DNA of 64,000 bases from Epiperipatus broadwayi (Eukaryota; Animalia; Onychophora), in NCBI GenBank assembly GCA_028023455.1, contig JAQFVV010000004.1:5332001-5396000 (forward strand), written 5' to 3'. The notes beneath the pieces are model-generated. The model had not been told where the DNA came from, did not search any database, and saw only the letters and a program-made list of their open reading frames with translations. Position numbers and translations under genes: made by a program. Of this stretch, positions 2,200 to 57,594 are shown in pieces. Every line of letters starts with the position of its first letter. The first letter of the stretch is position 1.

Positions 2200-3325
2200 A
2201 TCTCCACAATAGTGCCTCCTAATGGCTTTCATCAGTGAGGAGTCTTGGATTTGGGAACACTGCATCTGGATCTTTGGATCTAAGGTACCCCTTATCTAGC
2301 ACCTTATCTTTTATCTGATTGATTAACTAAGAAGCTATCAGCCTAAACTGAAAAATACAGTTTTTAATTTGCTTCTATAGTCATTCAGATCTAACCAATT
2401 CAGTATCTATATATTTTTCTATCCTTGGATTTTTTAATAACCATAGTCACTTTTATTCTTTTGTTAGGATTGGTATTAAACCATTAAAATTTCATGATTA
2501 CCTTTTCTTTAAGCATATACAAACTATTAAAACAATAGCAAAAAAAGTTTTTTTTTAAATAATGCCACCTAGTATAAGCTTGTAATCAATTGGTGATAGT
2601 GTCTAATAATTCCTGTCTAATGTTTTCTCATCTAATATCCCCAGATTTGTTCCTAGTTTATGGTTTTCATCAGTGAGGAGCCTTTAATTTTGAAACTGTG
2701 TACCTGGATTTTCAGATCTAATGCATTCTTTCTTAGAACTTATCTTTTTCCTTAACTATAAAGTTATCAGCCTAAACTGAAAAATACACTAATGGTTTCG
2801 ATCTAAACTAATTTACTTGTATAGTCATACAGATCTGAAACTATTTTGGGGAAAAAATTTTGCAACAGTTTTTAACAGCTTGTGTAAGCATAAAGAAAAA
2901 GATGATCATTTAAAGATTTTAATACCAATTCTAGCCCAAAGATAGCTATGGTTATTAAAAGAACCAAAGACACTACAATAAATACATTCTGAACTGATTT
3001 CAGATCTATATGACTGTAGAAGTGAATTAGCTTGGATTAAAGCATTAATGTGTTTTTCAGTTTAGGCTGATAGCTTTATAGTTATACAAACAAGTAAAAG
3101 ATAGGTGCTGAATAAGTGCATTAGATTAAAAAATCCAGGTGCACTACTTACAAATCCAAAGATCCAGGGCTACTGCTTCCAGATCCAAGGTTTCTCACTG
3201 ATGAAAGTCATAAACTAGAAACTAATCTAGGGATATTGGATGTGAAAGCATTGGATAGGCATTATAAGCCACAAGTATCCATTGATTACTAAAGCTTAAA
3301 TTAGGTGTATTATTTTCGTGGGGGA
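2200..3325. mobile_element. Decayed family-B array (~450-480 bp unit): two head-to-tail copies, then one inverted copy
   Basis: Shared blocks such as ttcatcagtgaggag (2228, 2666) and tatcagcctaaactgaaaaatac (2336, 2765) recur in direct orientation. They recur inverted at ~2860-3325 (gtgtttttcagtttaggctgatag at 3050; ctcactgatgaaag at 3194). The family also occurs at 5430-5620 and 63362-64000. Confidence 0.75.
3191..3234 (+). ncRNA. Degenerate hammerhead-like motif (family B)
   Basis: CTGATGA (3198-3204)-aagtcataaacta-GAAA-ctaat-c-taggg. The core order fits a minimal type I HHR, but stem II and helix III are mutated, so it is probably inactive. Confidence 0.35.
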
Positions 3326-13451: not shown

Positions 13452-14517
13452 TAGGGATCACCCATTACACATGCGCATAAACTAATAAACTCTTTTAAGG
13501 AATGCTTTCCTTTCCAAACACCAGATATAGAATGAAGTCATTGTACTTTTTTAACCTAAATGTATATGTATAGGCAAATCGTAAGCATTTGGAAATGAGA
13601 GTGTGAAAATATTAATTAATCACTTTTAATTCCATTTGTTATATTTTAATTATTGATGTCTGTGAAATTTTTACAATTTACGGCATGTCAGTATTAGGTG
13701 CAATATTAAACATATATATAATAAATTATTTATTCATACAGGGCTACGTTTTAATCTGTAACCATCATTAATATTTCTTAAGTGTTTATTAGTTTACAGT
13801 ACATATGAAGTGGGTAATCTCTAATGATTGTTACAGATTAAAACATAGCACTATATAAATAAATTAACTTATTATATATATGTTTAATATTACATCTAAT
13901 ACTGATGTGCCTTAAGTTGTAAAAATTTTGCAGACATCAATAATTAAAATATAGCAAATGGAATTAAAAGTGATTAATTAATATCTTCACATTCTCATTT
14001 CCAAATGCTTAAGATTTACCTATACATTTATGTTAAAAAGATAGAACAGATTCATTCTATCTTTTCATTTTGTGTTTAGAAAAGGAAGCATTCCTTAAAA
14101 GTATTTATTAGTTTATAGAGCATTGTAGTGGGTGATCTCTAATGATTGTTACAGATTAAAACATAATGCTATATAAATAACTCATTATATATATGTTTAG
14201 TATTACATTTAGTACTGATGTGCTATAAATTGTAAAAATTTTGCAGATGTCAGTAATTAAAATGTAGCAAATGGAATTAAAAGTGATTAATTAATATCTT
14301 CACACTTTCATTTTCAAATGCTTAATATTTGCCTATACATATATGTTTAGGTTAAAAGGGGTAGAGTGGATTCATTCTATCTTTTCAAAAGACTTTATCT
14401 TTTGTTTGGAAAAGAGAGCATTCCTTAAAAGTGTTTATTAATTTACAGCATGTGTAGTGGTTAATCCCTAATGATGGTTACAGATTAAAATATAGCACTA
14501 TATAAATAAATAACTCA
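13452..14517. mobile_element. Tandem/foldback array of a ~320-331 bp unit flanked by a 16-nt direct repeat
   Basis: One unit forward (13452-13770), then about 2.3 units inverted (unit starts near 13777, 14092, 14423). ttataaattacaaaat is identical at 13436-13451 and 14518-14533. Confidence 0.85.
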
Positions 14518-17500
14518 TTATAAATTACAAAATGAAAATTATCTTGAAGAATCCTATTTCCAATATTGCTTAATAAAAAGCGAGTAGAAAAAGTCTCTAG
14601 ATTTGGATGAATTTCTGAATATATGAAATTTAACTCACACACATACACCTTGTTTATATTTTAATTTGTATTTCAACAATAAACACTTCCATGTATTTTA
14701 TTTCAGTTCATTGTTGTATTTCGTGCAGAAATGTATATAATGTGCTCCAATCTCCTACCTAATTTGATTTTACTAAAGTTAGATTAGTTTATGAACTAAA
14801 CAAAAAGTGTAGAAAGTCATCTTGACGATTTTTTTTTACTAATATTATATTATTTCTCTCATATGATTTTTTTTTTTAATATAATAACTGAAATTTTGTT
14901 TTGTTTTAGCAATTATAATGATTCACTCCAAAATAAACAAATAAATAATTGATCGTTATATATATTATTTATTTTAGTAATGCAGTATTTGTGCAATAAC
15001 TTGATTACAAATTTTTATAGATTTGCTTTTTTGGTTAAAATGAATATTGAATAAGAAAATTTTGCTAAAAGTATTTAAATCTTTTTTATTATTCATGAAT
15101 TTGAAAATTTAAATTATAGCTTACTCAGGATTAGAGCAAAAGTAATAATTAAACCATAGAATAAAAATGAGAAAAGAGAATACATAAGTAAAAATTGTGC
15201 AGTAGAGTACAATAATTTACTATGAATATTAGAGATTAAAATTTTTTATCTCAGAAATAAGAATAAAAAATTGAGAATATTAGTGTTTCATTAAAACTAA
15301 AAGCAGTGCTACAATTACTAACAGCAAATTTATTTCAGTTTAATAATTGGAAAGTTGTAGAAAAAGACAAATAATAAAAGAAAATTATTAGTATCATTAA
15401 TAAGCAAAATTATATGCAAAAAAAGTGTAGGATAAAAAAAATCTCATCTTTAATGTTTTCTAAAATGAACAATTATTGGAGGATGTGTAAAGCAACCCCC
15501 AGAAATGATAATTTTAACATTTACCTTATGCAACATAAGAAATAAGTTTGCCATGTCTTTTGTATGCAGATTCATTATCATTTATGTTTTGATTAAGTCT
15601 ATGATACAACTGCATTAATAAAATCATATGAAATGGATATTCAGAATTTAGTCTGCCCAATCTATTTAAGGCATAAGGAGTCAGATCAGAAACAATGATA
15701 GAAGGTATAAAACTTGATAAACTTTTGCTTGTGCAAAGATTTTTTAGGCACAATTTGTAAAATTTGCAAATTAAGTATCTTCCCCTACTATAGTTGGTTT
15801 GTCAGATATTTGTGAAATTTTCTATTAAACTTTTATGAAATCCCTTTTGAAATGATACTATAAAACATGTTTTCTGTGGAACATCTAATGTATTGCTATT
15901 GAAACAATCATCCTGTATATATATTTGCCATTTATATTGTGGTTAACCACAAAATATATGGACAGTCAGATTGATAAGGATATAATTGACCTATTATGCT
16001 CATTCAAATATGATATGCAGCAACTAGAAATAAAAAAGAAATTTGTTTGAAGACACATTAAGTTTTAAAAAGTATCATTATTTTTCCAAATCTATTCTGT
16101 ATATATATATATATAAAATGGTAAATGAAATGGAAAGTAGTACCAAATGACACTGTTCACTATAGACAGTAACCAAAATAATGTTATAACTTCAAATAAT
16201 AAATAATGACAACCTTTAGGATTTTAATGTTAAAAACAATAACTATCTGAACATTTACAATGAAAATAAGTATATCATATGTGTGTAATCACTGTAACAA
16301 GATCTTATATAAGTGTTTGTTTATGTTGCAATAAAGTTCCTTTGAAACTAAAAAGAACAAACTGTTGTTAAAAATCTAACCAAAAATGAGCATCTCTAGT
16401 AAAAAATACAGTGATCTGAATAAGTATTAATAGTTATTTATTTAATAATAACTTTGTTCTAGCATAATTAAATATATATTAACATGTATTTTGTGAAATA
16501 CTTAAAACTTAGCTAACATGGGGAAAAATAGAACTTCAATTTCTCATCTTAGATAACTTATATATTTCATAATTAAGTAGGAGTAAAATTAAATTTTTAA
16601 ACAGAAACACAGAATCTTTAGTAAAAAAAAATATTAATAATTATTTATTTAACAGTAAATTTGCACTAACCTAATTAATAAAAGAATAAAATATAGTGTG
16701 TGCATGTTAAATATATTTTAAATTAAAAAAATAATATTCAGCATTTGTGTGTGTGTGTGTCTTTGGAAAAAAAGAATGACGGAATTTTGTCAGCACTGAA
16801 GGCTTGGAAGAGAGTGGGAGCAGAGCCCTCTAGTAAAAAATCTAAAATTGTTATTTGAATATTTCAGAGAAATATAAAGTGAAAGTTTGAATTATCTATT
16901 AAATTTATTAAAAGACTATTTTATGCTTCAGTAGTGAAATTTTAAGTTCTTTCTGTTGAGGCAGGTCAATGGCTGCAATTTAAATTTCAAATTGAGTGAT
17001 TCATATTAACAATTTCGTCCAATCTCACTATATTTATGCCATCTAGTATAAGCTTTACCAATCTATTGATGCTAGATGGTAGTGCTTAACAAAAAATATA
17101 AGCAAAGATCATGTGATATTTTGTTGGTTGTATCTTATTAATTCACATTATCTAATTATAAACAAAGATCTTATTGATAAAGGCATGTTTTTAATTAACT
17201 CCAAATTTCAAGAGAAAAAGCAATTATTATCATCATACTTCAATGAAAGGTGTCCGTTTCTTTTCATATAAACAATTAAATGTGTGAGAACCTTTGAGCT
17301 ATCATAGAAAATGAAGCTGGATAGTAAAATGATGACTTCGTTTCAAGTATTTATATGCCATATTGAATTGTCTATAATATTTATTTGATAATAGATATTT
17401 TTAGTATAGGAATCATAAAAAAAATCAAGTACATTTGAACACTTGTTTTTTTCTTTAATAAATTGAATTATGACTACCTTAAATTATAAAAAAAAAATTT

Positions 17501-17714: not shown

Positions 17715-18017
17715 ATTAATTTTGTTACTCCTAGAAATGTAGTACAATATGAAGTTTAGTGTGATTCTTTACAAGAAGATTGGATAGTCTATAATTTGAA
17801 AATTACTTGTGTGGGTTTGTAAAGACTATATGCTATGAACAAAGTATATATTTAACCAAAACAGTTTTATATATATTCCTTTAATAAGTCTAAAAATGAA
17901 ATTTGGAAATAAGTGCATTTCAGTGCCAATAAAGACTAAAAGTTTTCAAAATCAGTATAATTCTGAAGAGATGGTAATCAATTGCTACATATGCACTGTA
18001 CTGTCATATTAATCAAT

Positions 18018-18156
18018 ATTGTTTTGTTGAATATGAGGAAACTCTTGATCCAAGTCACATGATAGAGATTTTGAAAAGATAAGAGCAACCATCTTATCTT
18101 TTCAAAGTCTGTCATGTGGCTTGGATCAAGAGTTTCCTTATATTCAATAAAACAAT
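18018..18156. repeat. MITE-like hairpin (~65-bp arms, ~7-nt loop)
   Basis: attgttttgttgaatatgaggaaactcttgatccaagtcacatga...gaaaagataaga pairs with tcttatcttttcaaag...tcatgtggcttggatcaagagtttccttatattcaataaaacaat. Confidence 0.85.
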
Positions 18157-21100
18157 GTTAGTTAGTAAATATCTTAGTCAATTACAAAATCAGTATAATA
18201 ACTGTATTTCAAATATAGATAATCTTAGAGCCCTTGTTGATTATATAATGTTATAACTAATCTTTTAAGCATGTTACTGACAGATATATGTATCAAATGA
18301 AGTGATGCTTTTATTTTATACAAAATTAAATCATTAAGTTGTGAGTGGATTATTTTCAATTTTACTATGATTGTTTTTGAAATAAATTCAACTGATATAA
18401 TTTTTTTGACTGACACTTGTCAAAGATCAAAAAAAATTATTCACTCACTATCATAATACAGAATAATCATTTGTTTATTAATAATGAGCATTCTATAGAT
18501 GGTTATTTCTGAGTTATATATATGACAACCTTTTTAATAGTTCTATTTATGTATTATTAATAACACACACAAAAATAAATAAATGAGATACCTTCAATCA
18601 ATATGTTCAAATGCAAAATATAAGTTTTGTATTAGAAAGGCAGACCAGATAAATTCATATTCTAAAAAGTATTTCCATGGATAAGAATATAAAATAAATC
18701 ATTTTACAAGAAATAAGGAAGTTGGTATTAACTGTTATTAAACTTGTTAATAGCTTTAAAATAGATATTGTTATGGTAGTTAATGGAAATGTCATCACTA
18801 ACTTGTTTTGCTATTTTATAAATATTGTTATTCTTGTGAGAAATTAATAATATTAACAATTTAAAATTAATTAAGCATAGTTTTTTTTTTGTGTGTGTGT
18901 GTGTGGCAAATTAATTATTGCCTACATTTTGTATTCTACTAAAAACAAAATTCAAATGCAGAAATTGAGATACAAAGTGTATTCTAAAATAGATAAATAA
19001 AAGTTGAACTTGATTTTTTAAAAAATACAAAATGGAGACATAAATTATATAATAACATGTAAGAGTTCGAAATTGTGGTGTTTCTGCATCTGCAAGAAAT
19101 GTTGAAAATTAGTGATAGTTACTTTAAATTGTTTTAATGTTAATCTTATGAGTAATTTAGTATGTATTGTATTTTTTTTTATGTAGAAGAGTAAATTAAA
19201 TTATTTTTTAAATTATGGACAATATTTATTGTCAAGGTAGTGAATTATTATCATTTGCCAAAACAGTTTTGTAAATGTTAAATGTAAATGTTAAGCACAT
19301 GTAAAAATATTTGTGTAGAGTTAGAATTATATTAAGTTTACTAATAAATAAAAAAAATTAAAACAAAACAAACAGGAGTATACAACGTTAAGCACCTTGA
19401 TTACAAGTATAAGAGTTTGTTCATCAGTTATTTGCTTATTTTAATTTCACAAACCATTCATTCAGTTTTTATGATTTTTTTTTTTTTTTATGTATAATTT
19501 TATTCCTCTTTTTCATTGATTTTTTTTTTTTTAATTTCACAGTTAGTTGAAGTACAGAACTGTACAGCATTAATATTAGTATAGGCATGACTACTTTTCA
19601 AAAGATAAATACTAAATAAACAATTGAAATTCACTTTATTCATAAAATAAAAATTTGATGGGAAATTTAAAAATATCAAGATAATTAAGATTTTTAAAAA
19701 AAAAAAATCAATTTGTTTCTTACAAACATTATTACTAAGGACTTTATTAGTCAAAACAAAAAATATAAAATTTGCTTCTCATCTTTTAGCCTATATAATA
19801 TATTTATTTGCATATAGATAAATTTTACATCAAAAGATACATGATGAACTTTCACCATAATTCGTTGATGAAGATTGTTTTCGTTTTTCATAATTTTTTA
19901 TCAGACAAAAAATAAAAATTAGTTAATCAAACACTAATTTTTAATCTCATCAAAAGGATGAAAGTATTTTAGTTGTATCATTGACAGATTAAGCTAGGTT
20001 AAAAATTATTGTTGTGCAGTATACTATTGTTATTGTATGTACATATATATTCTCTGTTTAAAGTTAGGTTGATATTCTACACAGTAAGTTATATGGTTAA
20101 ACATTAAGCCTTAATCTTTAGTGATAACTTATTATTGCTTATAATCACCATCATATCCCTCTATTAATATTTTTTTTAACATTTTATTATTTAATGTCAC
20201 ATTTTTAATTTTAAAATTCATTAGTTAATAAATTCTTTGACAATAGACTAAATTAAAGAAGAAAGATCTTCAAATATTTCCAACAGTTACTATCTTCAAA
20301 CTCATGCAGAGCAAAATAGCTATATTTAAATTGTTTTCCAAAATTTTAAACAAATCTGGAAGAAATTTCCCTCAGTTATTTGATCTTAAATAATGGGTAT
20401 ATGAATAATGGAACCTTTGCCTCAACCGCCAGATTGGATATTGAAATCTTAAATTTGGTGTTTGAAATCAATTAATATTTTTCTATTTTTAAATTTTTTT
20501 TTGCCAAACTTCAATAAATTTTTTACTTTTTTTTTGAAAGATCAATTTGTCATATCACTCATTCTTTCTGAAATATAGATATATTCTCTCCAATTTTTTA
20601 ACACTTAAAAAAATAAAATCCTCTTTTTTTTTAACATTATATGTTTTCTTTTTTTGTTGTTGTTGTTGCAACACACTTCTGATAAATCTATTATATATAT
20701 TTTTTTCAAGTGGTACTTCTATATAATTCATTTTGTCACTATTACTGTATTATTCATTTTTTATTTATATGAGAATTAGATTACATTGCTTTACTATCAA
20801 ATGCGGTGTTAGATCAAAATAGTTTCCATTCTCTCCTGGATTAATGATCTGTAAGTTTTAAATGGGAGTTCAGGAAATTATAGACACAAATGGGATTGTT
20901 TGTGTGTACGTATATCGATGTATGTGCAGATATGTTGTACACATTAGTTTTAAAGGGGATTGTTTTTATGGCTAGTTTAACTCTTTTTGATTGATTCGTT
21001 TACAAGTTGATTAGCTAAATAAATTCCAGTAAGTGATGGATGTACTTCCTGTAAGTTTTGCTAATACTGGAGAATTTTTTTTTTTTGCTCAAATTGTTCA

Positions 21101-21712
21101 CTGTAAAGTTGATTTTTTTCAAAAGAAAAAAAGTAATGTGTAACATCTGGTGGTAAGATTCATCATGATTGAGACTTAGTGTTTGCAGACACGTGCTAGG
21201 CAACTGTCACTCCATCAGTGAATTAGATGCCTTTGATTTAAGATATAAAAGAAAAAAAGATCTGCATGAAATATTATAAGATGATAATTAACAGATGAGT
21301 GAACAGCTTAGGATTTTTATTTAATTACAGATTATTATATATATTTAAATTATATGTAAGTATACTTTAGTTATTAACTAAAACTATTATTTTAGGAAGA
21401 GAAGTAATTATAAAATGTTTTATAAATGTTAAAAATCTTTCATGTAATTTATCTGTGTATATGTATATATGAATGTATATGAAAGTTTTCTGTTGGAAAG
21501 ATTTATATCTCTATATGCAGTACATTATATGAATACAATGTTAGCAACAATGTACTTCACAATATTATTATAAAACCATTTTTTGTTTGAAAACACAGTT
21601 GATGCTTACCAGTTCACACTAGATTTCTGGGTTTTGGCATTTGTCCATGAGAGGAATAATTTTCATATGTTATTACAATTTTAGATTGAAGTTATCTTCA
21701 AGTTATTAACGT

Positions 21713-21850
21713 GAATAGCATATTAGAAGTAAAAGTAAATTCATGGATAGATATTTTTAATTCAGTGTTACTACAATTTTTAAATGTTATTAGCTTGAAT
21801 AGCATATTAGAAGTAAAAGTGAATTCATGGATAGATACTTTTAATCCAAT
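21713..21850. repeat. Local tandem duplication, period 84 bp
   Basis: gaatagcatattagaagtaaaagt(a/g)aattcatggatagata at 21713 and 21797. Confidence 0.8.
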
Positions 21851-22653
21851 ATTATTTATTGATTGATTATTCTAAATAGCTTTTAGAATATTGTGTTGTG
21901 AATTATTAGTATCAGTGTAAATTTTAAATATAAGTTAAAATTACTGTAGTTCTTTGTTTTAGTATTGTATGAATGTATATGTGATTTACTTTATTTAGAT
22001 AAAGTTTCAGCATATGATTGAGACATTTGCAAAAAAAAACATGAGTCCATGAATAGAATAAATGGAAAGAAGTACTTTGAAATAAGAATATAATGCAAAA
22101 AAATAAGTTATTAAATTCCTTCCAAATGAGAATATATAGAAAAATATTTTTTTAAAAAAAAAAATTGAAGTAGAAATGAATTTCACATACTACAAGAATA
22201 AGAATAATAATTCTTTGTCACAGATTGAATATTACACAGTAGATTATGTGAACCAGCACATAATATTTGATTATTGTTAGTAATACTTTGTCATTGTTTG
22301 CTAACCTTTTAATACAATTTATTATGAATTCTTTACATCATTAAGATGCTACCATCTTATATCTTTTTTTATTATTGTTAAATCCAAAAGAAGTATTTAC
22401 TTATTATATTAAAATATTATTTACAAAAAAGCTTGATTATTATCTTAAATTTTTCACTACAATGAGAACAGTAATTTTTAGTTAGTTTTAAATTTACACT
22501 TTTTATAATTAAATATTTGAAAACCAGGCACTCTTCACAAACCTGGGAGCTTAATTGTAAGTATAGAGGATTTGAACTCAGATTTTCAAGCACCCTTCAA
22601 CTATCCACACTATCTCATACAACCGATACACATGACCACACACATGTAGAAAA

Positions 22654-22721
22654 GATTAATAATCACCAATATACATATTTCATGTTAAACCAGCACTCAT
22701 CAGTTGGTCCAGATTATCATC
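22654..22721 (-). ncRNA. Type I hammerhead ribozyme, copy 1
   Basis: Minus strand: ACCAA-CUGAUGA-GUGCU-GGUUU-AACAU-GAAA-UAUGUA-UA^UUGGU. One C-A mismatch in stem II. Helix III is AUAUGUAU. Confidence 0.75.
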
Positions 22722-23130
22722 TCTCACACATATATATAATCAATGCTCAGTTTATATTAAGATAGCAAATCTTCCTACTTTAATGGACAGGCTTCAATCC
22801 ACTGCAACCTCCAACTTTTCAGCTATCCATATCATTGAAAATCTGATGATGAAAACTCAAATCCCATGCTGATGTTAATATTATTGCCATGCCCATGTTG
22901 ACCTGATGTCACTCTGACCCCTCATGTATAGGACAGTATCCATTAAATACATACAAGAGGGATGGACAGGATACAAGCTTGATATGTAAATATTTGAAAA
23001 CCAGGCACTCTTCACAAACCTGGGAACTTAATTGTAAGTATAGAGGATTTGAACTCAGATTTTCAAGCACCCTTCAACTATCCGCACTATCTCATACAAC
23101 CGATACACATGACCACACACATGTAGAAAA

Positions 23131-23198
23131 GATTAATAATCACCAATATATGTATTTCTTGCTAAACCAGCACTCATCAGTTGGTCCAGATTATCATC
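23131..23198 (-). ncRNA. Type I hammerhead ribozyme, copy 2 (impaired)
   Basis: Minus strand: CUGAUGA-GUGCU-GGUUU-AGCAA-GAAA-UACAUA-UA^UUGGU. The 10.1-11.1 pair is a G-A mismatch. Confidence 0.65.
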
Positions 23199-23630
23199 TC
23201 TCACACATATATATAATCAATGCTCAGTTTATATTAAGATAGCAAATCTTCCTACTTTAATGGACAGGCTTCAATCCACTGCAATCTCCAACTTTTCAGC
23301 CATCCATATCATTGAAAATCTGAAGATGAAAACTCAAATCCCATGCTGATGCTAATATTATTGCCATGCCCATGTTGACCTGAAGTCCATCCCTCTTATA
23401 TGTATTTAATGGATACTGTCCTATACATGAGGGGTCAGAGTGACTTCAGGTCAACGTGGGCATGGCAATAATATTAGCATCAGCATGGGATTTGAGTTTT
23501 CATCTTCAGATTTTCAATGATATGGATGGCTGAAAAGTTTGAGGTTGCAGTGGATTGAAGCCTGTCCATTAAAGTAGGAAGATTTGCTATTTTAATATAA
23601 ACTGAGCATTGATTATATATGTGTGTGAGT

Positions 23631-23698
23631 GATGATAATCTGGACCAACTGATGAGTGCTGGTTTAGCATGAAATACTTATATTGGTGATTATTAATC
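23631..23698 (+). ncRNA. Type I hammerhead ribozyme, copy 3
   Basis: CTGATGA 23649-55, stem II GTGCT/AGCAT with loop GGTTT, GAAA 23671-74, helix III ATACTTAT, predicted cleavage after A23682. Stem I is ACCAA/TTGGT, plus ATAATC/GATTAT beyond a TGG bulge. Confidence 0.8.
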
Positions 23699-24105
23699 TT
23701 TTCTACATGTGTGTGGTCATGTGTATCGGTTGTATGAGATAGTGTGGATAGTTGAAGGGTGCTTGAAAATCTGAGTTCAAATCCTCTATACTTACAATTA
23801 AGCTCCCAGGTTTGTGAAGAGTGCCTGGTTTTCAAATATTTACATATCAAGCGTGTATCCTGTCCATCCCTCATATGTATTTAATGGATACTGTCCTATA
23901 CATGAGGGGTCAGAGTGACTTGAGGTCAACACGGGCATGGCAATAATATTAGCATCAGCATGGGATTTGAGTTTTCATCATCAGATTTTCAATGATATGG
24001 ATGGCTGAAAAGTTGGAGGTTGCAGTGGATTGAAGCCTGTCCATTAAAGTATGAAGATTTGCTATCTTAATATAAACTGAGCATTGATTATATATATGTG
24101 TGAGA

Positions 24106-24173
24106 GATGATAATCTGGACCAACTGATGAGTGCTGGTTTAGCATGAAATACGTATATTGGTGATTATTAATC
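24106..24173 (+). ncRNA. Type I hammerhead ribozyme, copy 4 (best preserved)
   Basis: CTGATGA 24124-30, stem II GTGCT/AGCAT, GAAA 24146-49, perfect palindrome ATACGTAT (24149-24156). Predicted AUA-triplet cleavage after 24157. Bulged stem I as in copy 3. Confidence 0.88.
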
Positions 24174-24984
24174 TTTTCTACATGTGTGTGGTCATGTGTA
24201 TCAGTTGTATGAGATAGTGTGGATAGTTGAAGGGTGCTCGAAAATCTGAGTTCAAATCCTCTACTTTTTATAATTGTAATTTATTTGGTTTTTTCATGTC
24301 AACCCTCCCCCCCCCCCAATAAACTTAATTTTTAAGCTTTTAAATTATGTATTCATTATCTTCTTTTTTTTTTCACAAAAGTTTTTATTGTTTCATTTAC
24401 CCCTAGCCAAAACCTTTTTATTGATCATATTTTTTTATACAATATTTGGATCCTGTGGTTATTCTTATTTATCTTTCATTTCATTTTCAACTTACCTTGC
24501 TTTGTTTTTTTTTTCATATGAATCATTTTTCTCAATTTCTAATTAAGGATTTTTTTTTTCTGAAACTAGGTTTTTTTAATTATAGAAAATGAAGCAAGTT
24601 AATTATTTTATTAGCATATTATCATAACAAAAATTATTATAGTTAATACAAAAATGCTCAAAATAGTTCATTAAGAAAATTTGCAAAATATTTAAGCAAT
24701 AGATTTTATTCTAATTATAGCAAATAATGGTGTTGTATAATTATGTAATAGATAAATTAATAGATACTGATTTAAAGTATACTCATGGCCATTTTGAATT
24801 CTAAGGACCACCCAAAATCCCCGTTGACACAGCCAAGCAATAAATGACATTGAATAATCCATACATGGTTGCAATATGACCATTCATTACAAAATCACAA
24901 TTTACATCAATATTTGAAAAATTAAAGCATAAATTTTGTACAACTATGCTTGATTAAATCACATGACTAAAATATAAAAAATGT

Positions 24985-26067
24985 GAGGAACGAATAAACT
25001 TTGAAGTACTAAAAGCTTATAATTTCTAAAATATGAATTTAAAATACTTAGACAGAAAAAGTAAATGAAAAAAAATAATGGACACTTTAATTAAAAAACC
25101 ACTTGTTCAATAAACATAAAATTGATCAAACCAAGCTTATAATTTTGAAATATTAGAAGCTTATAACTTCTAAAATACGAATTTTATTACAATATAGGCC
25201 CATAACCACATGTTGAAATAACGTAAATGTTGAATACACATAGAATCAACTGCCAAAACTTATTAATTCTACAATTAATAATAAATTGCAATTTATTATT
25301 AACATTAGTCAAAAGAATAATTATCTAAACTAAAGAATAGTAAATTTACAATTAATAAATCAGAATTTTTTTTCTTACCAAAATGGGTAATGTTGTGTGC
25401 TTCATTTATCATATGTCATTATTTGCTAGTGAATGGATAAAAAGAATCTATATGAGATAGATTTATTCATTAAATTTCTTCAAGATACTAATGCTACCTA
25501 CTGCTGGTGAAATGGTTAGTGTTTATCTTATTTAATCAGCAATTTTTTATTAAAATCTGTAAATATTTTTTTAACATGTTTTCATGTTCATTTGTTAATA
25601 GTAAAAGTCACTTCGATATTAATAAATAGAAAATTATATAAATAGATATATAGATTTCCATCAATTTCAAGAGCCTGTAAGGATTTCTCATGATCAAGTG
25701 TAGATCCGATATTCATGTCAGGAGATCAAATGTGAAAAATGCTATTTTTTCTAACTACTGGAACAAAGGAAACATACATCAGAGTTTCTTTCTAGTAAGA
25801 AAAAATCCAATTAATTGTAAAATTAATATGCTTTATTTTATATGGTTATGGGCATTTATTGTAATAAGATTAATATTTTAAAGGATATAAGCTTTTAGTT
25901 TTTCAAAATTATAAGCTTGGTTTGATCAATTTTACGTTATTTCAACATGTGCTTATGTGCATATATTGTAATAAAATTTTGATTTTAGAATTTATAAGCT
26001 TTTAAGTTTTCAAAAGTATAAGCTTGGTTTGATTAACTTTACATTATTTCAACATGTGCTTATGGAC
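24985..26067. repeat. Foldback with internally tandem (~107-bp) arms around a ~600-bp spacer
   Basis: aaattgatcaaaccaagcttataattttgaaa...aagcttataa(c/t)ttctaaaata at ~24985-25235 recurs reverse-complemented twice at 25843-26067 (period 107). Confidence 0.75.
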
Positions 26068-31877: not shown

Positions 31878-32091
31878 ATTAGATGTGATAATATGTTGGA
31901 CTATTTCCATCATCTATCATTAAATGTTGACTGTAGAGAAAATTTTACACTTTATTTAAACTTTTCAGATACAAACAACTTGTTAGTGTTAGCGATAACA
32001 CACAAATAGACAACACAAGTTAGTAATTTTCTATACATTCAATATTTAATGATAGATGATGGAAATAATCCAACATATTATAACATCTAAT
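31878..32091. repeat. Foldback of the PLE terminal segment (~66-bp arms)
   Basis: attagatgtgataatatgttggactatttccatcatctatcattaaatgttga pairs with 32025-32091. The same sequence terminates both PLE copies (38830-38890, 42790-42850). Confidence 0.8.
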
Positions 32092-48400: not shown

Positions 48401-50219
48401 TAGGTAATTTATTAATCAAATATGCTTGAAAACTGTTTTTGTATTCCATATTAGCTGATTTAAGAAAGCCAAAAAGAAAGGTTGAAATGGGAATTTCAGT
48501 TTGTTACACTCACCTTAATATTGATCAAAGTCATCTAACTTTCAGAAAACAATTTTTCGATCATTATAACTAATACATTTGTAAATGAAGAATATACATT
48601 CCCATATAATGATAGAAATATAACAAACTTCATTTTCTCTTGCAATTATGCTAATACTTAATATAAATGAACATAGAAGACTGAGATTAGTCCAAAAGAT
48701 GTAAAGTTCTATGATGGATGATCAAATTCCCAATATAGCAAGATTTTATCATGTTCTTCAGAAATAGTGTTCATAATATCAAATATAAACTTAAATAATT
48801 GCTTAAGAGGACGTTAAAAATTCTATATTTCTTACAATTCTCAATGGAACAATTGTAGAACAATTTGAAATTTTTTTATTTTCTAGATATTTTAGTTAAT
48901 TCTGCATGATTTGGTGCAGTAGTAATGTGACAAACTGGAACTTAAGATTTATGGATTGTGCCCAGTTCTATTGCCTCTGACACTGAAATTTCTTTATGAA
49001 TATCCAAGCAGTGAAGTCATTTGATTTTTTTTTATAGAAATTTTAATTTCAGAAATTTAACTACAGTATTTCAAAATATATATCATTAATAAAAATATTC
49101 TAATTATTAAATGTTATGTATCTGCTTAAATCAAAGCTGCAGAATTTTGTAATGATTTATTAAATCTGATAGCATTGCAGTTATAAAAGTTACTCATATG
49201 ATTATTTCTTTGATGACTTTTGATTTGAGTAAATTATTATTTACAAGAAGATATCAAATGACTTTCTAACATGATTATGTAAAAATAAATGACATAATTT
49301 TTATATTTTCTGATCAGAAAATATCAGTTTTAGATATCCACTGATTTTGTAAAAGTGAATAAAGAAAACATTATTTTTTCTAAGAATACATAAAAAATCT
49401 ATATGATAAAGGATAACAATGCTAAAGATTTCTATAGCATTAATGTGGCTTTTAAAAAAATCATTTTAAATAAAAATTCTCTAATTAAAGTCAGGGATTA
49501 CTTCAGATATAAACAAAAAAATGTCAGATTCATTTGATTAGTGGTGAATAATATAATAACCAAAATATATAAGATCGTACATATTCTGTCAATAACTAAA
49601 TAAATATTGCAAAGAAATCAAATCATATATCACGTGACTTAATTTAACAAGCTTGTATTACAAATATTATCTAATGAGCTTGCCAATAGCTCTTAACAAG
49701 CTTTTCAGAATATCCCTAATTCCAGACTGGTTTCTGCTTCTGGCTTCCTCATTGAGGTGCTAGGATATATAGCCATATGGGACTGGACTAAGTTCAGATA
49801 CATTATATATTAATAGCTTTAGCAATATAAAATTGCCAAAGCCTTAATAGCAAAAAATATAATTGCAAAGAAATCAAGTCATATATCATGTGACCTAATT
49901 GTAATACAAGCTTGTTAAATTAGCTCACATGATATATGACTTGATTTTTTTGCAATTAAATTTTTGTTTTTAATGCTTTGGTGATTTTATATTGCTAAAG
50001 CTATTAATATATGGTGTATCTGAACTTAGTCCAGTCTCATGTGGCTGTTTATGTTAGATAGCTAGATTTAAAGACATATGAATGTCTGAAAATTTCAGAT
50101 TTTCTAATTAATAATTAACCATTTGAAATAGTTAAGGCTTTACTTCATTAGCATTTGAAATCAATTAATATATATATATGCTCTGCGCACAGATAATGAA
50201 GCTGTTAAACGTAATTACC

Positions 50220-50426
50220 ATATGTGCTCTGCGCATAGATAATGAAGCTATTAAACGTAAGTAAAATTATCAAGAGTTACCGCCGAGCTATTTCAGGACA
50301 GTTTATAGTCCCATATTCATGGCTACATGAATATGGGACTATAAACTGTCCCGAAAGTGCTTGGCGGTAACTCTTGATAATTTTACTTAAGTTTAATAGC
50401 TTCATTATCTGTGCGCGAGCACATAT
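50220..50426. repeat. Near-perfect hairpin (~100-bp arms, 4-nt loop GCTA), MITE-like, nested in the 49.6-kb array
   Basis: 50220-50321 pairs with 50326-50426 (ggacagtttatagtcccatattcatg-gcta-catgaatatgggactataaactgtcc). The first ~45 nt are also duplicated at 50172-50215. Confidence 0.88.
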
Positions 50427-50496
50427 ATTTATTAACCATTTGATAAAGTGCTGGGTTTGACCTGGTATTTTAAAACTAATGCTTGAATATTCTAGC

Positions 50497-50535
50497 ACCT
50501 CACTGAGGAAGCCAGAAGCAGAAACCTGTCTGGGA
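50497..50535 (+). ncRNA. Hammerhead-like motif (family C)
   Basis: CCTCA-CTGAGGA (50503-09)-A-GC-cagaa-GC-A-GAAA-CCTGT-C^TGGG. 4-bp stem I, 2-bp stem II flanked by A/A. An inverted sister copy lies at 49718-49760. Confidence 0.4.
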
Positions 50536-53500
50536 TTAGGGATATTCTGAAAAGTCTGTTAAGATCTATTGGCAAGCTCATTAGATAACTAAATATATAT
50601 TAAATTTCTTGTTATGAATTAATCTAATAATTATCATTCAGTTGACATCAATAAAACTATCCAGATCTTTTACCATAAAGAAATGTTTGTAACAAAATAT
50701 AATTTGTGATCCTTTGCGCAAGAAAATATTGATTAAATCTATTTATACAAATTATTTTTAAAAAGTTCAACTTTATCAATTATTAACAGCAAGAGTCATT
50801 TGGCTGTAGTCAGCAAACAAATGCAGCAGTATACTATATAAGCTTACTATGAAACAAATAATTTAATCATTAATATTATAATAATCTATGGTTTCTTTTT
50901 TTAGATCATTTGATTTTCGAACAAAGGAGCAATTTGCAGTTAAAATGACATTAGTTTTTTTTTCCATTTTTCTCAGTTGAGAATTGATCCAGGCATTTGC
51001 CACTATACAAAACTATGCATGACTAATGAACCATTATAATATAAATTAATAAACTACTTAATTTTTTTATTTAGATGTTAATTTTGCTTATATTTAAGGC
51101 ATCAGTCCAATAAATATTACAAATTCAGCTACAGTTTTATTAAACTATAAATGAACTGTTTTATGACATTTAAAAAATATCAGTCAATGTTCAAAATATA
51201 TTGTTGCTTAAAGATTTTTTTTTTTAAATCTTCCCTTTAACTTAATCAGCTTTTGCAGATATGTATTATATTTAATCGGCACTTTGTTACATTTACATAT
51301 AACATCAATAAAAGTAATTTTAACTTATTGCAAAAATGTTGAAATCTGTTGAACAGTGCATTAGTAATTTTTAATGATAGAAAGAATCTAGGTAGAACTT
51401 TAAAATAAAACAGTCTTCTATGAAATTCAATTGCATAAAAATATTATGAGACAGATATTATTAAGTAGAAAAATCTTATGGAAATAATCAGACATATTTT
51501 CAAAATGAAAAAGATATATATATTGATATAACAAAAACATATGCTACTTGAGTTTTTTCCAGATTAAAATCATTAAAAGACATTTAAGATGTGGAATATC
51601 AATTCTGTAGTTAACTTAGCATAAGCTAATAAAATATCAATTCACTCACAAATCCTCAGTGACTTAGAAAAAAAAATTATGTAAAAAAAAAAAAACAACA
51701 ACTAGAAATTACATAAGTCTTAGAATATTGTTTGTATTCTGATTTGCATGAAACTGAATTTTATTTTATTAACTGTTTTTAAAAAATCACATAACATTAT
51801 ATGTGGCAACTCTCATGATGATAAGCTATATTAACATCAAATAATCCAATCTTTATAGCAATGATAATTAGAAGGCTATCATTTAATTTTATTTCTCTCT
51901 GGCTAAAATTACAGTTTGTGATATCCAACTATCCTATGGTTATTTTTACCATTTTTATTTTATTTATTCCTAAATGATTTTAAAGCTTCAGTTTGTGGTA
52001 TGTGCAACAATTTTAAGTAACTCACCCCCATACATATTCTTTAGGTTTCATTTTATAATTTTTAATCACATTGCACATTATAAAATTTACAAATCTGCAA
52101 TTGATTTAATGTTGAAAACCTGGAGATGAAATTTTTTGATTTTTAAGTAGTACCACTATGGAAAAACAAATTTATTCTCATTTTCTAAAAATATCTAATT
52201 TAAAAAGAAATGTTAAAATATAATTTTAATTGAATAGAATTCATTTATATCTATGCAAAAAGGATTTTTGTTTTTTAATTATTTGTGAGATTTATGATTG
52301 TATTGTTTAGTTAATAATAAAATGATGAATCCAAGAACTAAAGATCCCTGGATCAAAGCACACATCCACTTATGCTAATGTTCAAACATCACATGACCTC
52401 CTGAACAACTATCTATTCAATTGTTAATTTAATATATTTTATTAAATTAAGAAGCAGAAATCATCTCAATATAAATTTGACTCCTATTTTATGTTTAATT
52501 ATAGGTAAATTTTTATAAACTTAAATTGCTAATTTAATTTCTCATTGATAACAAAGAGCTTATTGAAATGCTGATTTTTTTAAAAATTTCTAATCATAAA
52601 TTTTAAGCTTGTTTATTTTTTTATGTTAGACTTTCTGTGTTATACAGGTTTTACATTACAAATTATGAAGAAAAAAAATATTTTGTAAATTGTATTTGAT
52701 TTCATTGCTTGTTTTTGTTGTGTCACAGGAAATTAATTCAGTAAGTTTTGGAAAGTGCTTTGTTATACTTTTGCAAATATGTTTGCCATCATTATTCTAA
52801 AGTTTTCAACCAAACTAACTTGATTAGCTATATAAATCGGAAACTAGTTGACCTACCATCCATATATATATTAGTAACCTTGGTTATAAACTACCTGCAG
52901 ACACCTTTGATTTTTTTGAGGGGAAAAGATGAAGGATGATATGCTTATTTTGATAGTATCTAACAAATAGTTATCATTGAAAATCATAAAGAAAAAAAAT
53001 ATTTGCCCTACTTCAAAAATAAAATATTTATAAAGAGCTGGTAAAATATGATAAAATAGAGCAGTATATACATTAGGATAAATCAATTTAGAGAAAAATC
53101 AAATTGAGTAAAATTAAGCAAGCATTGGACAAGCTATTCCATGACTTCATAATTTCATTAGTTTTCTTTATTGGCAGAAGAGAGTGTTGATTCCTACTAT
53201 CTAATCCATCTAATAGCCACTTTTTTAATGCAAAATTTTTGTTTATAACAATATAAAAGTTGTTAAACTCAAGTTTACTTGCTTGTTTAATTATATTAAT
53301 CTAAATCTAGATCAGTAACTATAACTTTTAGTGACTTTCAACTAATTGCAGTAGTTTTTTGTTTTATTGGCAAGAGAATAGGATAATATGAAAACTATGA
53401 ATACTATAATCTTCTAGGCTTATATAGTTGAGTGAAAATAGTCATAAAGGATTCTGCATTAGATAGTGATGATTCTATATTTAGTCTAACTAAATAAATA

Positions 53501-55849
53501 AGAATAGAATAAGCCAATTATATTAGTTAGAGGCAGTAAAAACAAATATTTGTAACTACTTTTTGATTAATTGAATTTTTTTCCATCATATGAAAAATAA
53601 ATTTCATCTGTTGAATCACATTTTTTGTGAAATCTGAAATATTTTGATTGAGAAATAATTCACAGCATGAAACTGTCTAGAATTTTTCTAGATGTAAAGA
53701 ACGATTTGTTTTGATTGCAAATTAATTCCAAGTAAACTCTCTTCATTCCATGAGAATATTGCAACAAAGTTTTTTAAAAAAAAAAGCTAATCCAAGCTTT
53801 CAATAAAGAGTATTTTTATCAAAAGGCTATAATAGATTTAACAAACCTACATATATGCAACAAATTGTAAAATCCACTATTAAAAAGAAAAATGTCATTA
53901 GCTATGTTATTAATAGATTTTTCGATACAAAAAATTATAAAATGCTATACATTAAAAAATCATTTCTTGTTATTGGTTTTTGAATATAAAGCATTTTTTA
54001 ATTTTTTGTGTTGAAAAATCCATTAATAGCACAACCAATGGCATTCTTTTTATTAACAGATTTGCTTAGCAATTTTTTTGAAATTTTGTTGCCAAATTGT
54101 GGAATATATTTTTTTACATATTGCTATGATTTATGTATATATTTCCAATTTTACATGTATATCTTTACATCAAATTATACAAAATAATATAGAACATGGA
54201 GTTTGCTTTAGAACGTAAAATGGTACCCTAAGCTATATTAGTAGAAGATCCATAAAAAATGAGTGTGAAGATTGAAATGATGGAAAGAAAATTTCATAAT
54301 AGATATAATTAGCTGATGTAGAAACTTTTATTAAGACAAATGTAATTTGAATTTTTAGCACTTGGACGCTATGATAAGAAAAGCTTAGAATTTACATGTT
54401 TTAGATTAAGCTTAGCGCTTTTGAAACCTATTTATGGTCTATATTCATATCACTGATTGTTGAGTAGGGGGGGGGGGGTATAAATGTAAGTTTATTTTAA
54501 TTTATTCAAATGTATGTGCCGAGTTAGCTAGCTCACTTGCCAAACTTTCAATGGAAACATTTAAATCATAGTTTAATAATTGGAGATATCTCATTGAAAC
54601 TTAAGAAATTAAGTAAAGCTTATTTCTAGAAATAAAGACTCTAGTAAAGAAAGCAAAAACAAAAATGATGGGAAGACATCAATCAGTGCTTATGAAAAAA
54701 TTCAAAAAGAAAAAAAAAACACTAGATTCAAGAGTCACTAGTTGTCAATAAAGTTTTGAAGGAAGCTATGATTGAGTGAAATCAGATGAAAATAATATTG
54801 TATTATACAAGAAACATTAAAACTATTTCAAGAAAAATGATTGCTTAAAAAAAAAAAAGACACTTTAGAAATTGCAAAACAATAGTATATGTTTGTTCAT
54901 CTGCATAACAAAGTGTTTTGTTTTTTCTTCTTCTTTATATCATAAAGCTGAGTTCACTACAAATACAAATGATGGGGGAAATCAGTAGAACTATAATGTA
55001 AGATAAAATGTAATTTTATAGTAGACTAAACTGATTGGAAGATCAATGTAGAGATATAGAAAAATATTTTGGAGAATGCATAAACAAATACACAAGATGG
55101 TAACAAAAAAAACCCAGGAATGTTAGCCAAAATCATAAACATTAAAATGAAAAATGCTCACCAGCAAGAATGTAATTTTAAAACAAAGATATGAGAGTGT
55201 GCTATACAAAGCATAAGAGTCATATGTGACTCCTGACTGCAGGTTTCTATGCACATTTGAGTACATATTGAAATAAATAAGCTTAGGATCATATGATTTT
55301 TAATTTTGTTATTAACTACATGATATTAACATTAAAAAATAAGATTATTAACAATTAAAAGAAACAATTACATCACATGAAAGTATTCAAAAAACAAAGT
55401 AAATACATTCGTTAAATATTAATCATGACTTCATATTGCAGACAGATTATCAAACGTGGAAAAGGCATTTTAACTAACTTTTAAAAACATGAATGTATTT
55501 GATTTCTAATAGGCTTAACAGATATTTATATATCTATTAAACATGAATTCTGTATTAATAGTTTACTAATTGGCTGTCTCAAAACAAAAGATAATGCTCT
55601 TAACCTCCACTTAAATGTGATGAATTTAAATGTAACTTATCCTGATGAAAGTTTTATGTAATTAGTACAAAACTGTTTATTTATGACTATTAATGTAAGA
55701 AATAATATGCATATAATATATAAAATTTGAGTGTGTTTGCACATAATTTTTCATCTAACATAGATGTGATTGTTGCTATTATCATATAAATTATTTCTCT
55801 CTTTTTTTTTAAATCAATCTTTTCATTTTATCTGTTTCGGAGCCTTCTA

Positions 55850-57139: not shown

Positions 57140-57276
57140 ATTCACTGGATCTGATGGTCCCAGTGGTTTTGGTTTTGAATTAACGTTTCGACTCAAGAGA
57201 GAACAAGAAGAAACTGCACCACCCACTTGGCCAGCTGCTTTAATGCAAGCCCTTGCTCGTTATGTCTTTCAATCTG
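57140..57276 (+). CDS. Sufu: Suppressor of fused, single internal exon (equivalent to human SUFU exon 3)
   Basis: After a polypyrimidine tract and AG (57138-39), it encodes FTGSDGPSGFGFELTFRLKREQEETAPPTWPAALMQALARYVFQS, then GTAAGA at 57277. The 137-nt length and the phases match what I recall for human SUFU exon 3 (FTGTDGPSGFGFELTFRLKRETGESAPPTWPAELMQGLARYVFQS). Confidence 0.96.
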
Positions 57277-57594
57277 GTAAGATACTAAAAAGTTTTAAAT
57301 TTATATTAAAGTTGATAATTCTTCTTATATATAGTAATTAAAATTATTAATTTTTGTGATTTTTTAAATGAGAAATTAAAGAGTACTTGAAAGCCAGTGT
57401 TACTTTAAAAAAATAAGAATTCTTATAAGTATATGTTGGATTACTTTTTTAATCTAATTTAATTCTTAAATGTTTTTAAAAAGGTTTAAACTTTATTTAT
57501 ACTTTTCCAAATATATTTAACTTACAGTGATAACATGAAGGTTAGTATAAAATACTATGTTTCAGTAGTATTATTCTTTTTTTTTTGGATGTTT

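Follow-up and report, generated by a model that had tools for sequence, protein, structure and literature searches.

The window analysed here is a 64,000-nt stretch of the onychophoran Epiperipatus broadwayi (assembly GCA_028023455.1, contig JAQFVV010000004.1, positions 5,332,001 to 5,396,000), and between its positions 22498 and 24275 it contains an insertion made of four partial copies of a non-coding repeat unit, each of which carries a candidate hammerhead ribozyme (Table 1). The 13-bp direct repeat described in the original prediction is exact and encloses 1752 bp, and its edge coincides with the exact end of similarity to the repeat unit. We estimated, rather than simulated, the probability of such a 13-mer arising by chance, which is ~1e-7 at fixed boundaries (74% A+T) and ~1e-5 when some slack in the boundaries is allowed. 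The target is A or T at 12 of its 13 positions. Inside the duplication lie two arms that are complementary at 96–97%, and the change of orientation falls at a GTC trinucleotide common to both of them, where it had been placed before. Successive units lie 477 bp apart in the left arm and 475 bp apart in the right arm, and pairwise identity among the four units is 97.0–97.4%, so that the earlier description of ~477-bp units with ~97% identity is borne out. An open reading frame (ORF) search found none longer than 95 aa in the insert, again as described, and just two ORFs of at least 110 aa in the whole window, neither with a Pfam match. Hence the insert lacks the reverse transcriptase (RT)/GIY-YIG ORF of an autonomous Penelope-like element (PLE) and is at most a non-autonomous passenger. 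The window has 26% G+C and a CpG observed/expected ratio of 0.19, and the hammerhead repeat unit is itself low in GC (37%).

Table 1. Coordinates of the features of the insertion (window positions; strand given for features with a hammerhead sense)
Feature	Coordinates	Strand	Remarks
Left copy of target-site duplication, 13 bp	22498–22510		ACTTTTTATAATT; exact direct repeat; adjoins the first base that aligns to the repeat unit
Right copy of target-site duplication, 13 bp	24263–24275		ACTTTTTATAATT; exact direct repeat
Left arm, 877 nt, 1.84 units	22511–23387	−	hammerhead sense on minus strand; 3′ end 22511 (outer), 5′ end 23387 (centre)
Right arm, 878 nt, 1.84 units	23385–24262	+	hammerhead sense on plus strand; 5′ end at centre, 3′ end 24262
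One-sided tail, 54 nt	22511–22564	−	unit positions +106 to +159 past the cleavage site; outer end of left arm only
GTC microhomology	23385–23387		common to inner (5′) ends of both arms; from alignment
Central spacer, 54 nt	23388–23441	+	unit sequence at inner end of right arm only; from inverted-repeat and arm alignments
Candidate hammerhead copy 1	22665–22708	−	predicted cleavage after 22670; core intact; C-A mismatch in helix II; helix III palindrome kept through G-U pairs
Candidate hammerhead copy 2	23142–23185	−	predicted cleavage after 23147; core intact; G10.1 opposite A11.1; helix III palindrome broken (CA); fails the structural descriptor
Candidate hammerhead copy 3	23644–23687	+	predicted cleavage after 23682; core and helix II intact; helix III palindrome broken (CU)
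Candidate hammerhead copy 4	24119–24162	+	predicted cleavage after 24157; ACCAA / CUGAUGA / 6-bp helix II with GUU loop / GAAA / palindrome AUACGUAU / A17 / UUGGU
Upstream strand of long helix I extension	24048–24123	+	pairs with the 72 nt after the cleavage site (23683–23754; in the next unit 24158–24229)

The outer termini of the insert are unequal, because the left end has 54 nt that are absent from the right end. Counted from the cleavage site, the 3′ end of the right arm lies at +105 and that of the left arm at +159; of the distances of 106 and 159 nt proposed earlier, the second holds and the first is 1 nt too long. The right arm ends without the tail stretch, which it does contain internally, at 23797–23850. 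When the two arms are brought into register, the left arm extends 54 nt further in the 3′ direction, and the right arm 54–57 nt further in the 5′ direction. Each arm thus holds 54 nt in register that the other does not have, and therefore neither arm was copied from the other and two separately templated complementary DNAs (cDNAs) are needed. The same in-register sequence excludes a later inverted duplication. It also bears on self-priming, in which one cDNA would have folded back and copied itself. Head-to-head PLE repeats with palindromic junctions have been read in this way (PMC3846280), and a smaller foldback of the same window (17962–18184) is a near-perfect palindrome that fits such an origin. 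In the present insert, however, the centre is not palindromic and consists of the 54-nt spacer and the 3-nt microhomology; a copy made from the right arm would enter target DNA at the place where the 54-nt tail stands, and a copy made from the left arm in the required register would be ~456 nt long, not 878 nt. We consider self-priming extremely improbable for this event. Moreover, because of the mutual register overhangs of the arms, the template must have spanned at least ~931 nt (1.95 units), with its ribozyme sites uncleaved.

This anatomy closely resembles that of PLE insertions. In Adineta vaga the typical Penelope insert has direct pseudo-long terminal repeats (pLTRs) with an adjacent inverted pLTR, mostly head-to-head; it is flanked by an 8–10-bp duplication, and one inverted repeat carries a 31-bp tail at its 3′ end (PMC3846280). 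PLE clades in general show partial tandems, often with an inverted 5′-truncated copy, and a 30–40-bp tail at one end (PMC8557442). In vitro, a purified PLE protein from Anolis was shown to cut both strands of a DNA target, for which it prefers AT-rich sequence with ATT, and to extend each of them. It begins reverse transcription within the RNA, at two neighbouring sites 85–92 nt or more past the hammerhead cut, and the sequence between these sites is the tail (PMC11167929). Unprocessed multimeric RNA is its main substrate and is inserted irrespective of ribozyme activity (PMC11167929). The present insert likewise combines a partial tandem with an adjacent, head-to-head, inverted and 5′-truncated copy; it has a one-sided tail at one 3′ end, a short duplication at an AT-rich target with a putative nick after AATT, and hammerheads upstream of the presumed RT start sites (PMC3846280, PMC8557442, PMC11167929). 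As in the in vitro insertions, both strands would have been extended and the ribozyme sites copied uncleaved (PMC11167929). The giant foldback emphasized in the original prediction is thus real; however, it is not unusual, since it matches the published signature of PLE insertion (PMC3846280, PMC8557442, PMC11167929). The insert differs from those elements in having no RT/GIY-YIG ORF, and its inversion junction is a 3-nt microhomology with a 54-nt offset rather than a palindrome.

We therefore think it probable, with some confidence, that the locus records one retrotransposition of a non-autonomous, non-coding hammerhead repeat, that is, an animal non-LTR retrozyme or PLE-derived satellite-like element, most likely mobilised by a PLE. 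The original proposal of a retrozyme-like non-coding element that depends on a PLE-type RT fits everything that could be tested. We infer the RNA template, the enzyme and the order of events from published PLE biology, and these would be as follows. The AT-rich target would be nicked on both strands, 13 bp apart, with the top-strand nick just after ...TATAATT. Both exposed 3′ ends would then prime reverse transcription on hammerhead-sense RNA longer than one unit, beginning internally at two sites that lie 105 and 159 nt past the cleavage site; the intervening 54 nt would give rise to the one-sided tail. Each cDNA would run for ~877 nt across two uncleaved ribozyme sites, after which the cDNA 3′ ends would anneal through the 3-nt GTC/GAC microhomology, and fill-in would leave head-to-head arms between 13-bp copies of the target.

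Two further observations concern the presumed start sites. The target at 22495–22510 is complementary at 11 of 16 positions to the template at 23842–23857, immediately downstream of the start site of the left arm, as compared with 5 of 13 positions at the right junction; a possible role is that of an annealing aid at the distal start site, and as a post hoc observation we do not use it as support. In addition, the right arm stops directly after GAGTTCAAATCCTCT (24244–24262; compare GTTCAAATC), which resembles a Pol III B-box or tRNA T-arm. The B-box-like stretch occurs also at 22564–22582 and 23769–23787, with an A-box-like TAGTTGAAGGG 15 nt upstream, and it may be a part of the recognition or start region of the RT. 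A tRNA at the end of the right arm was rejected, because ARAGORN finds none despite the B-box-like GAGTTCAAATCC and the spacing is too short for a tRNA.

The same joint can be looked at as a product of DNA repair, in which a staggered double-strand break took up two fragments, either from a genomic satellite array or from extrachromosomal circular DNA, without reverse transcription. The family is a high-copy, tandem-type repeat, and end-joining at a 3-nt microhomology is typical of break repair. However, random capture predicts neither a clean 13-bp duplication nor that both 3′ ends point outward at positions that match the start-site geometry of PLEs. A terminal inverted repeat (TIR) or Foldback DNA transposon, the other origin at the DNA level, is excluded by the termini, which are not inverted copies of each other, as one end has the 54-nt extension. 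Taken together, we judge an event at the DNA level improbable. Joining of two cDNAs at a microhomology within a single pair of target duplications is also what links the insert to twin priming of LINE-1. There, as Ostertag and Kazazian are said to have described in 2001, both nicked strands prime cDNA, and the cDNAs are joined at a microhomology, which gives an inverted 5′ segment within one pair of duplications. The segments in LINE-1 come from different parts of a non-repetitive RNA, whereas the periodic template proposed here gives the product its palindromic look.

The form of the template can be addressed by the differences between units. A single column separates the units two against two: the inner units have T (at 23505 and, on the opposite strand, 23324), the outer ones A (at 23980 and 22847). 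This pattern follows directly if the template was transcribed from a tandem array with two slightly different units, or was a two-unit circle. On the strength of this one site we lean towards such a template as the most likely one, either a multimeric transcript that was left uncleaved and has a period of two units or a circle of two units. Of the earlier inference that the template was circular or multimeric and longer than one unit, the length (at least ~931 nt) holds, and a unit-length circle is disfavoured by one variant. Such a circle, a ~477-nt RNA of the same element copied by the same enzyme through rolling-circle reverse transcription, has several points on its side. Each arm is longer than one unit and runs through two intact cleavage sites with no indel, the units hardly differed from one another when they were inserted, the ends of the monomer are held in a long predicted helix that favours ligation, and animal retrozymes are known to form circles (PMC7229834). 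It would, however, give four identical units, so that the same transversion would be needed twice in the exact pattern (estimated at ~1–2%), and in vitro the PLE uses unprocessed multimeric RNA, ribozyme mutants being inserted equally well (PMC11167929). We thus regard a unit-length circle as unlikely.

In unit coordinates, 20 nt separate the 3′ end of the left arm from the 5′ end of the right arm, which lies downstream of it. This gap would fit twin priming on one RNA of ~3.7 units, and a gap that small is expected by accident in ~9% of cases. The arms are also equal in length to within 0–3 nt (877 versus 878–880 nt), the offset of 54–57 nt is constant at both ends, and each arm stops 74–77 nt short of two full units. 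A speculative reading, to which we would give little weight, is that a dimeric PLE RT moved along one template, perhaps a two-unit circle of 954 nt, each half of the dimer synthesising one cDNA in lock-step with the other, and that the leading enzyme stalled ~20 nt before the priming site of the other. If this were true and general, one could read from insertion footprints how far apart the two active sites are and what topology the template had.

We then examined the ribozyme. In hammerhead sense each unit has, in this order, ACCAA (5′ strand of helix I), CUGAUGA, helix II, GAAA, UACGUAU, A17 and UUGGU (3′ strand of helix I). Helix II has 5–6 bp (GUGCUG/UAGCAU) with a GUU loop and is intact in only two of the four copies; helix I has 5 bp, a UGG bulge and then at least seven further pairs; helix III consists of just A15.1-U16.1 and U15.2-A16.2 with an ACGU loop, and AUACGUAU is a perfect palindrome. 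The core (CUGAUGA, GAAA, A15.1...U16.1 and a non-G, here A, at position 17) is present in all four copies, the three helices are arranged as in type I with an open helix I, and minimum free energy (MFE) folds recover helices I and II. Only the copy at 24124–24162 equals the four-copy consensus throughout. The two plus-strand cleavage positions predicted earlier are correct by sequence, and the corresponding positions on the minus strand could be added (Table 1). The 10.1–11.1 pair is G-U in the consensus, not G-C, and the axolotl retrozyme HHR_Amex2 likewise has a non-Watson–Crick pair at this place (PMC7229834). A 29-nt hammerhead segment occurs in four copies as compared with none in shuffled sequences. 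A structural descriptor, made by hand to include the core, helix II, A15.1-U16.1, a non-G at position 17 and a 5-bp helix I, matched three of the four copies, compared with two matches in total in 30 shuffles of the window. Rfam matches to microRNAs at the centre of the insert were discarded, as they merely reflect the palindrome.

Animal type I hammerheads with a helix III of 1–2 bp and a small palindromic loop are active as dimers (PMC4209133), and cut efficiently only as dimers in multimeric RNA (PMC4209133, PMC7229834). With its 2-bp helix III and palindromic loop, the present ribozyme is a well-formed candidate, rather than a demonstrated member, of this dimer-dependent class, and would be expected to cut multimers to monomers of 475–477 nt. 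A helix of ~60 bp is predicted between the 72 nt after the cleavage site and the 76 nt before the core, and its cofolding energy of −53.4 kcal/mol compares with −26.1 ± 3.2 kcal/mol in shuffled sequences (z = −8.6). The MFE fold of the monomer also contains this helix. As a whole, the monomer folds no more stably than shuffled sequences in either polarity (z = −1.2 and +0.5), and significance is confined to the end-pairing helix. As modelled, this helix would keep the two monomer ends side by side for ligation after cleavage, as in retrozyme and viroid-like RNAs.

Several observations weigh against our interpretation. The 54-nt tail and the 13-bp duplication exceed the published values of 30–40 nt and of 8–10 bp (the latter from Adineta). 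A complete type I hammerhead had been ascribed to every unit; this stands for the core of all four, but a single copy is free of point defects in helices II and III, and in two of the other three the defect affects the CpG within the palindrome. A covariance-model search, by which the original prediction was to be checked, gave no hammerhead at the Rfam gathering score, and a search of 2.2 kb at E ≤ 10 gave none either. When a slice of 91 nt was searched, RF00163 aligned over its full length at the expected place, 24118–24163, with a weak score of 10.5 bits versus the cut-off of 34 (E = 9.5). Since this score is below the gathering cut-off, the ribozyme call rests on the hand-made descriptor. 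Contigs of the element from RNA libraries (four species) are only 60–180 nt long and without direction, and may reflect carry-over of DNA. Finally, in the Logan contigs, which at ~60–400 nt are too short to show the palindrome centre, an empty site in a sister species or read ends at the cleavage sites, we found no read or contig across the centre or the right junction and no empty site; a paralogous empty site was likewise not found in the window.

The last point leads to the question of whether the palindrome was made by the assembly, from a chimeric long read or a collapsed repeat. Complex tandem and inverted PLE structures do trouble assemblies (PMC8557442), and the centre of the insert is the part that no contig spans. 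Artefactual palindromes, however, have identical arms in the same register, whereas these arms differ at ~2.7% of sites, mostly by transitions, and are offset by 54 nt. Moreover, the flanks are unique within the window and share the 13-bp repeat in direct, not inverted or mirrored, orientation, and the left junction is supported by a short-read contig that runs from the left flank through the duplication and 22 nt into the insert. An assembly artefact is thus highly unlikely.

The differences between units also bear on the age of the insertion. Among 23 variable columns, 20 are private substitutions (14 transitions and 6 transversions), with 4–6 per unit; the other columns include one CpG site with multiple hits, and just one column, the one discussed above, is shared by two units. 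Because this divergence is star-like, the units were nearly identical at insertion. At about 1.0–1.3% of private changes per unit, which by sequence would be the drift of each unit since then, the insertion appears recent, not brand-new, and the ‘young’ of the original prediction holds only in this relative sense.

The hammerhead repeat family is clearly high-copy. In one DNA run of the same organism, 141,920 contigs match the insert at 88% identity or more, and the summed word depth, which is not a copy number, is 1e5 to 7e6 on the insert, as compared with single contigs of ~30x on the flanks, which are single-copy. The depth peaks from ~230 nt before the cut to ~160 nt after it, and is 10–100 times lower over the remainder of the unit; in another species almost only this −230 to +160 module was found. 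This profile indicates a conserved module of ribozyme and start sites with a variable part attached to it. Sequencing runs of at least 10 organisms, related species among them and RNA libraries included, contain exact 31-mers of the element. Variants at a level of at least 10% in the RNA libraries do not fall in the core; in and around the ribozyme they affect position 24152 of the helix III palindrome and positions 24112 and 24170 of distal helix I. Among the best-supported 40 of 174 variable sites in the DNA runs, position 10.1 (24131) is the only one inside the ribozyme. A sequence-string search of a collection of papers did not find the repeat family, and two metagenome scans with the hammerhead segment gave no match.

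Animal retrozymes are non-coding tandem repeats with type I hammerheads (PMC7229834), and a 2026 preprint argues that they derive from the terminal repeats of PLEs (10.64898/2026.07.22.740005). The present element agrees with animal non-LTR retrozymes (PMC7229834; 10.64898/2026.07.22.740005) in being a non-coding, low-GC repeat a few hundred bp long, with a single type I hammerhead in every unit and without an LTR, primer-binding site or polypurine tract (the last two not specifically searched), in its duplication of more than 4 bp, and further in a weak helix III, an expected dimer dependence, paired monomer ends and a proposed dependence on PLEs. It differs in its unit of 475–477 nt, compared with the 170–400 nt reported for their RNAs, and in being a discrete head-to-head insertion of 1.84 + 1.84 units instead of a long tandem array. 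The satellites of newts, schistosomes and Dolichopoda crickets (cited in PMC7229834 and PMC4209133) likewise have type I hammerheads with a short helix III in units a few hundred bp in length, and those ribozymes show double-hammerhead activity; unlike those arrays, the insertion described here is bounded, and its duplication records the mode of integration. The novelty that had been suspected therefore does not extend to the kind of element, which was already known (PMC7229834; 10.64898/2026.07.22.740005): this is a new sequence family of a known kind, and not a new class or principle.

The dependence of retrozymes on PLEs has so far been argued mainly from co-occurrence and sequence relatedness (10.64898/2026.07.22.740005). 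The insertion is a well-preserved natural footprint, in which a hammerhead repeat was integrated with every structural hallmark of PLEs. Its mechanistic content would be two independent primings on opposite strands, from start sites separated by 54 nt, and a template in which at least two units were left uncleaved. This agrees with the in vitro work on PLEs of 2024 (PMC11167929) and, for this event, argues against the older model of self-priming. Its value is thus confirmatory, and the locus is a good one for tests.

Other foldbacks are present in the window. At 17947–18199 an exact 15-bp direct repeat, CAAAATCAGTATAAT (17947–17961 and 18185–18199), surrounds a 223-bp insert, which is a near-perfect palindrome centred near 18087 with a ~7-nt loop and ~28 extra nt on the left only, and which has no CUGAUGA core. 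It follows the same insertion blueprint as the hammerhead insert, with a snap-back origin possible there. With its 28-nt tail and ~7-nt loop it breaks the equality of tail and central spacer as a general rule. A degenerate small foldback at 1959–2155 comes from a relative of the hammerhead repeat family and is 82–85% identical to unit positions 10–102, a part that lies wholly downstream of the cleavage site; its arms are ~80% complementary with a 25-nt spacer, and the best candidate for a duplication, the 7-mer TTATAGT, is not significant. We had considered that this foldback ends at the unit position of the right arm, which was dropped because the inverted repeat runs past that point. More inverted repeats, with arms of 50–185 nt that are 76–93% complementary, lie at 2222–3289, 13477–14525, 25082–26061, 31878–32091, 49591–50588, 50231–50416 and 53877–54059, and an 11-bp direct repeat flanks 49603–50584. 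These are possibly insertions of other families with the same blueprint.

Around the hammerhead insert, two copies of an 84-bp tandem repeat (80–90% identical) are found at 21699–21882, ~0.7 kb upstream of the insertion, and are unrelated to the hammerhead unit. Further downstream, an ORF fragment on the plus strand (57141–57281) with ...GFGFELTFRLKRE...APPTWPAALMQALARYVFQSG... is what we take to be an exon like that of Suppressor-of-fused (SUFU), so that the insertion may lie in an intron of, or close to, a SUFU-like gene.

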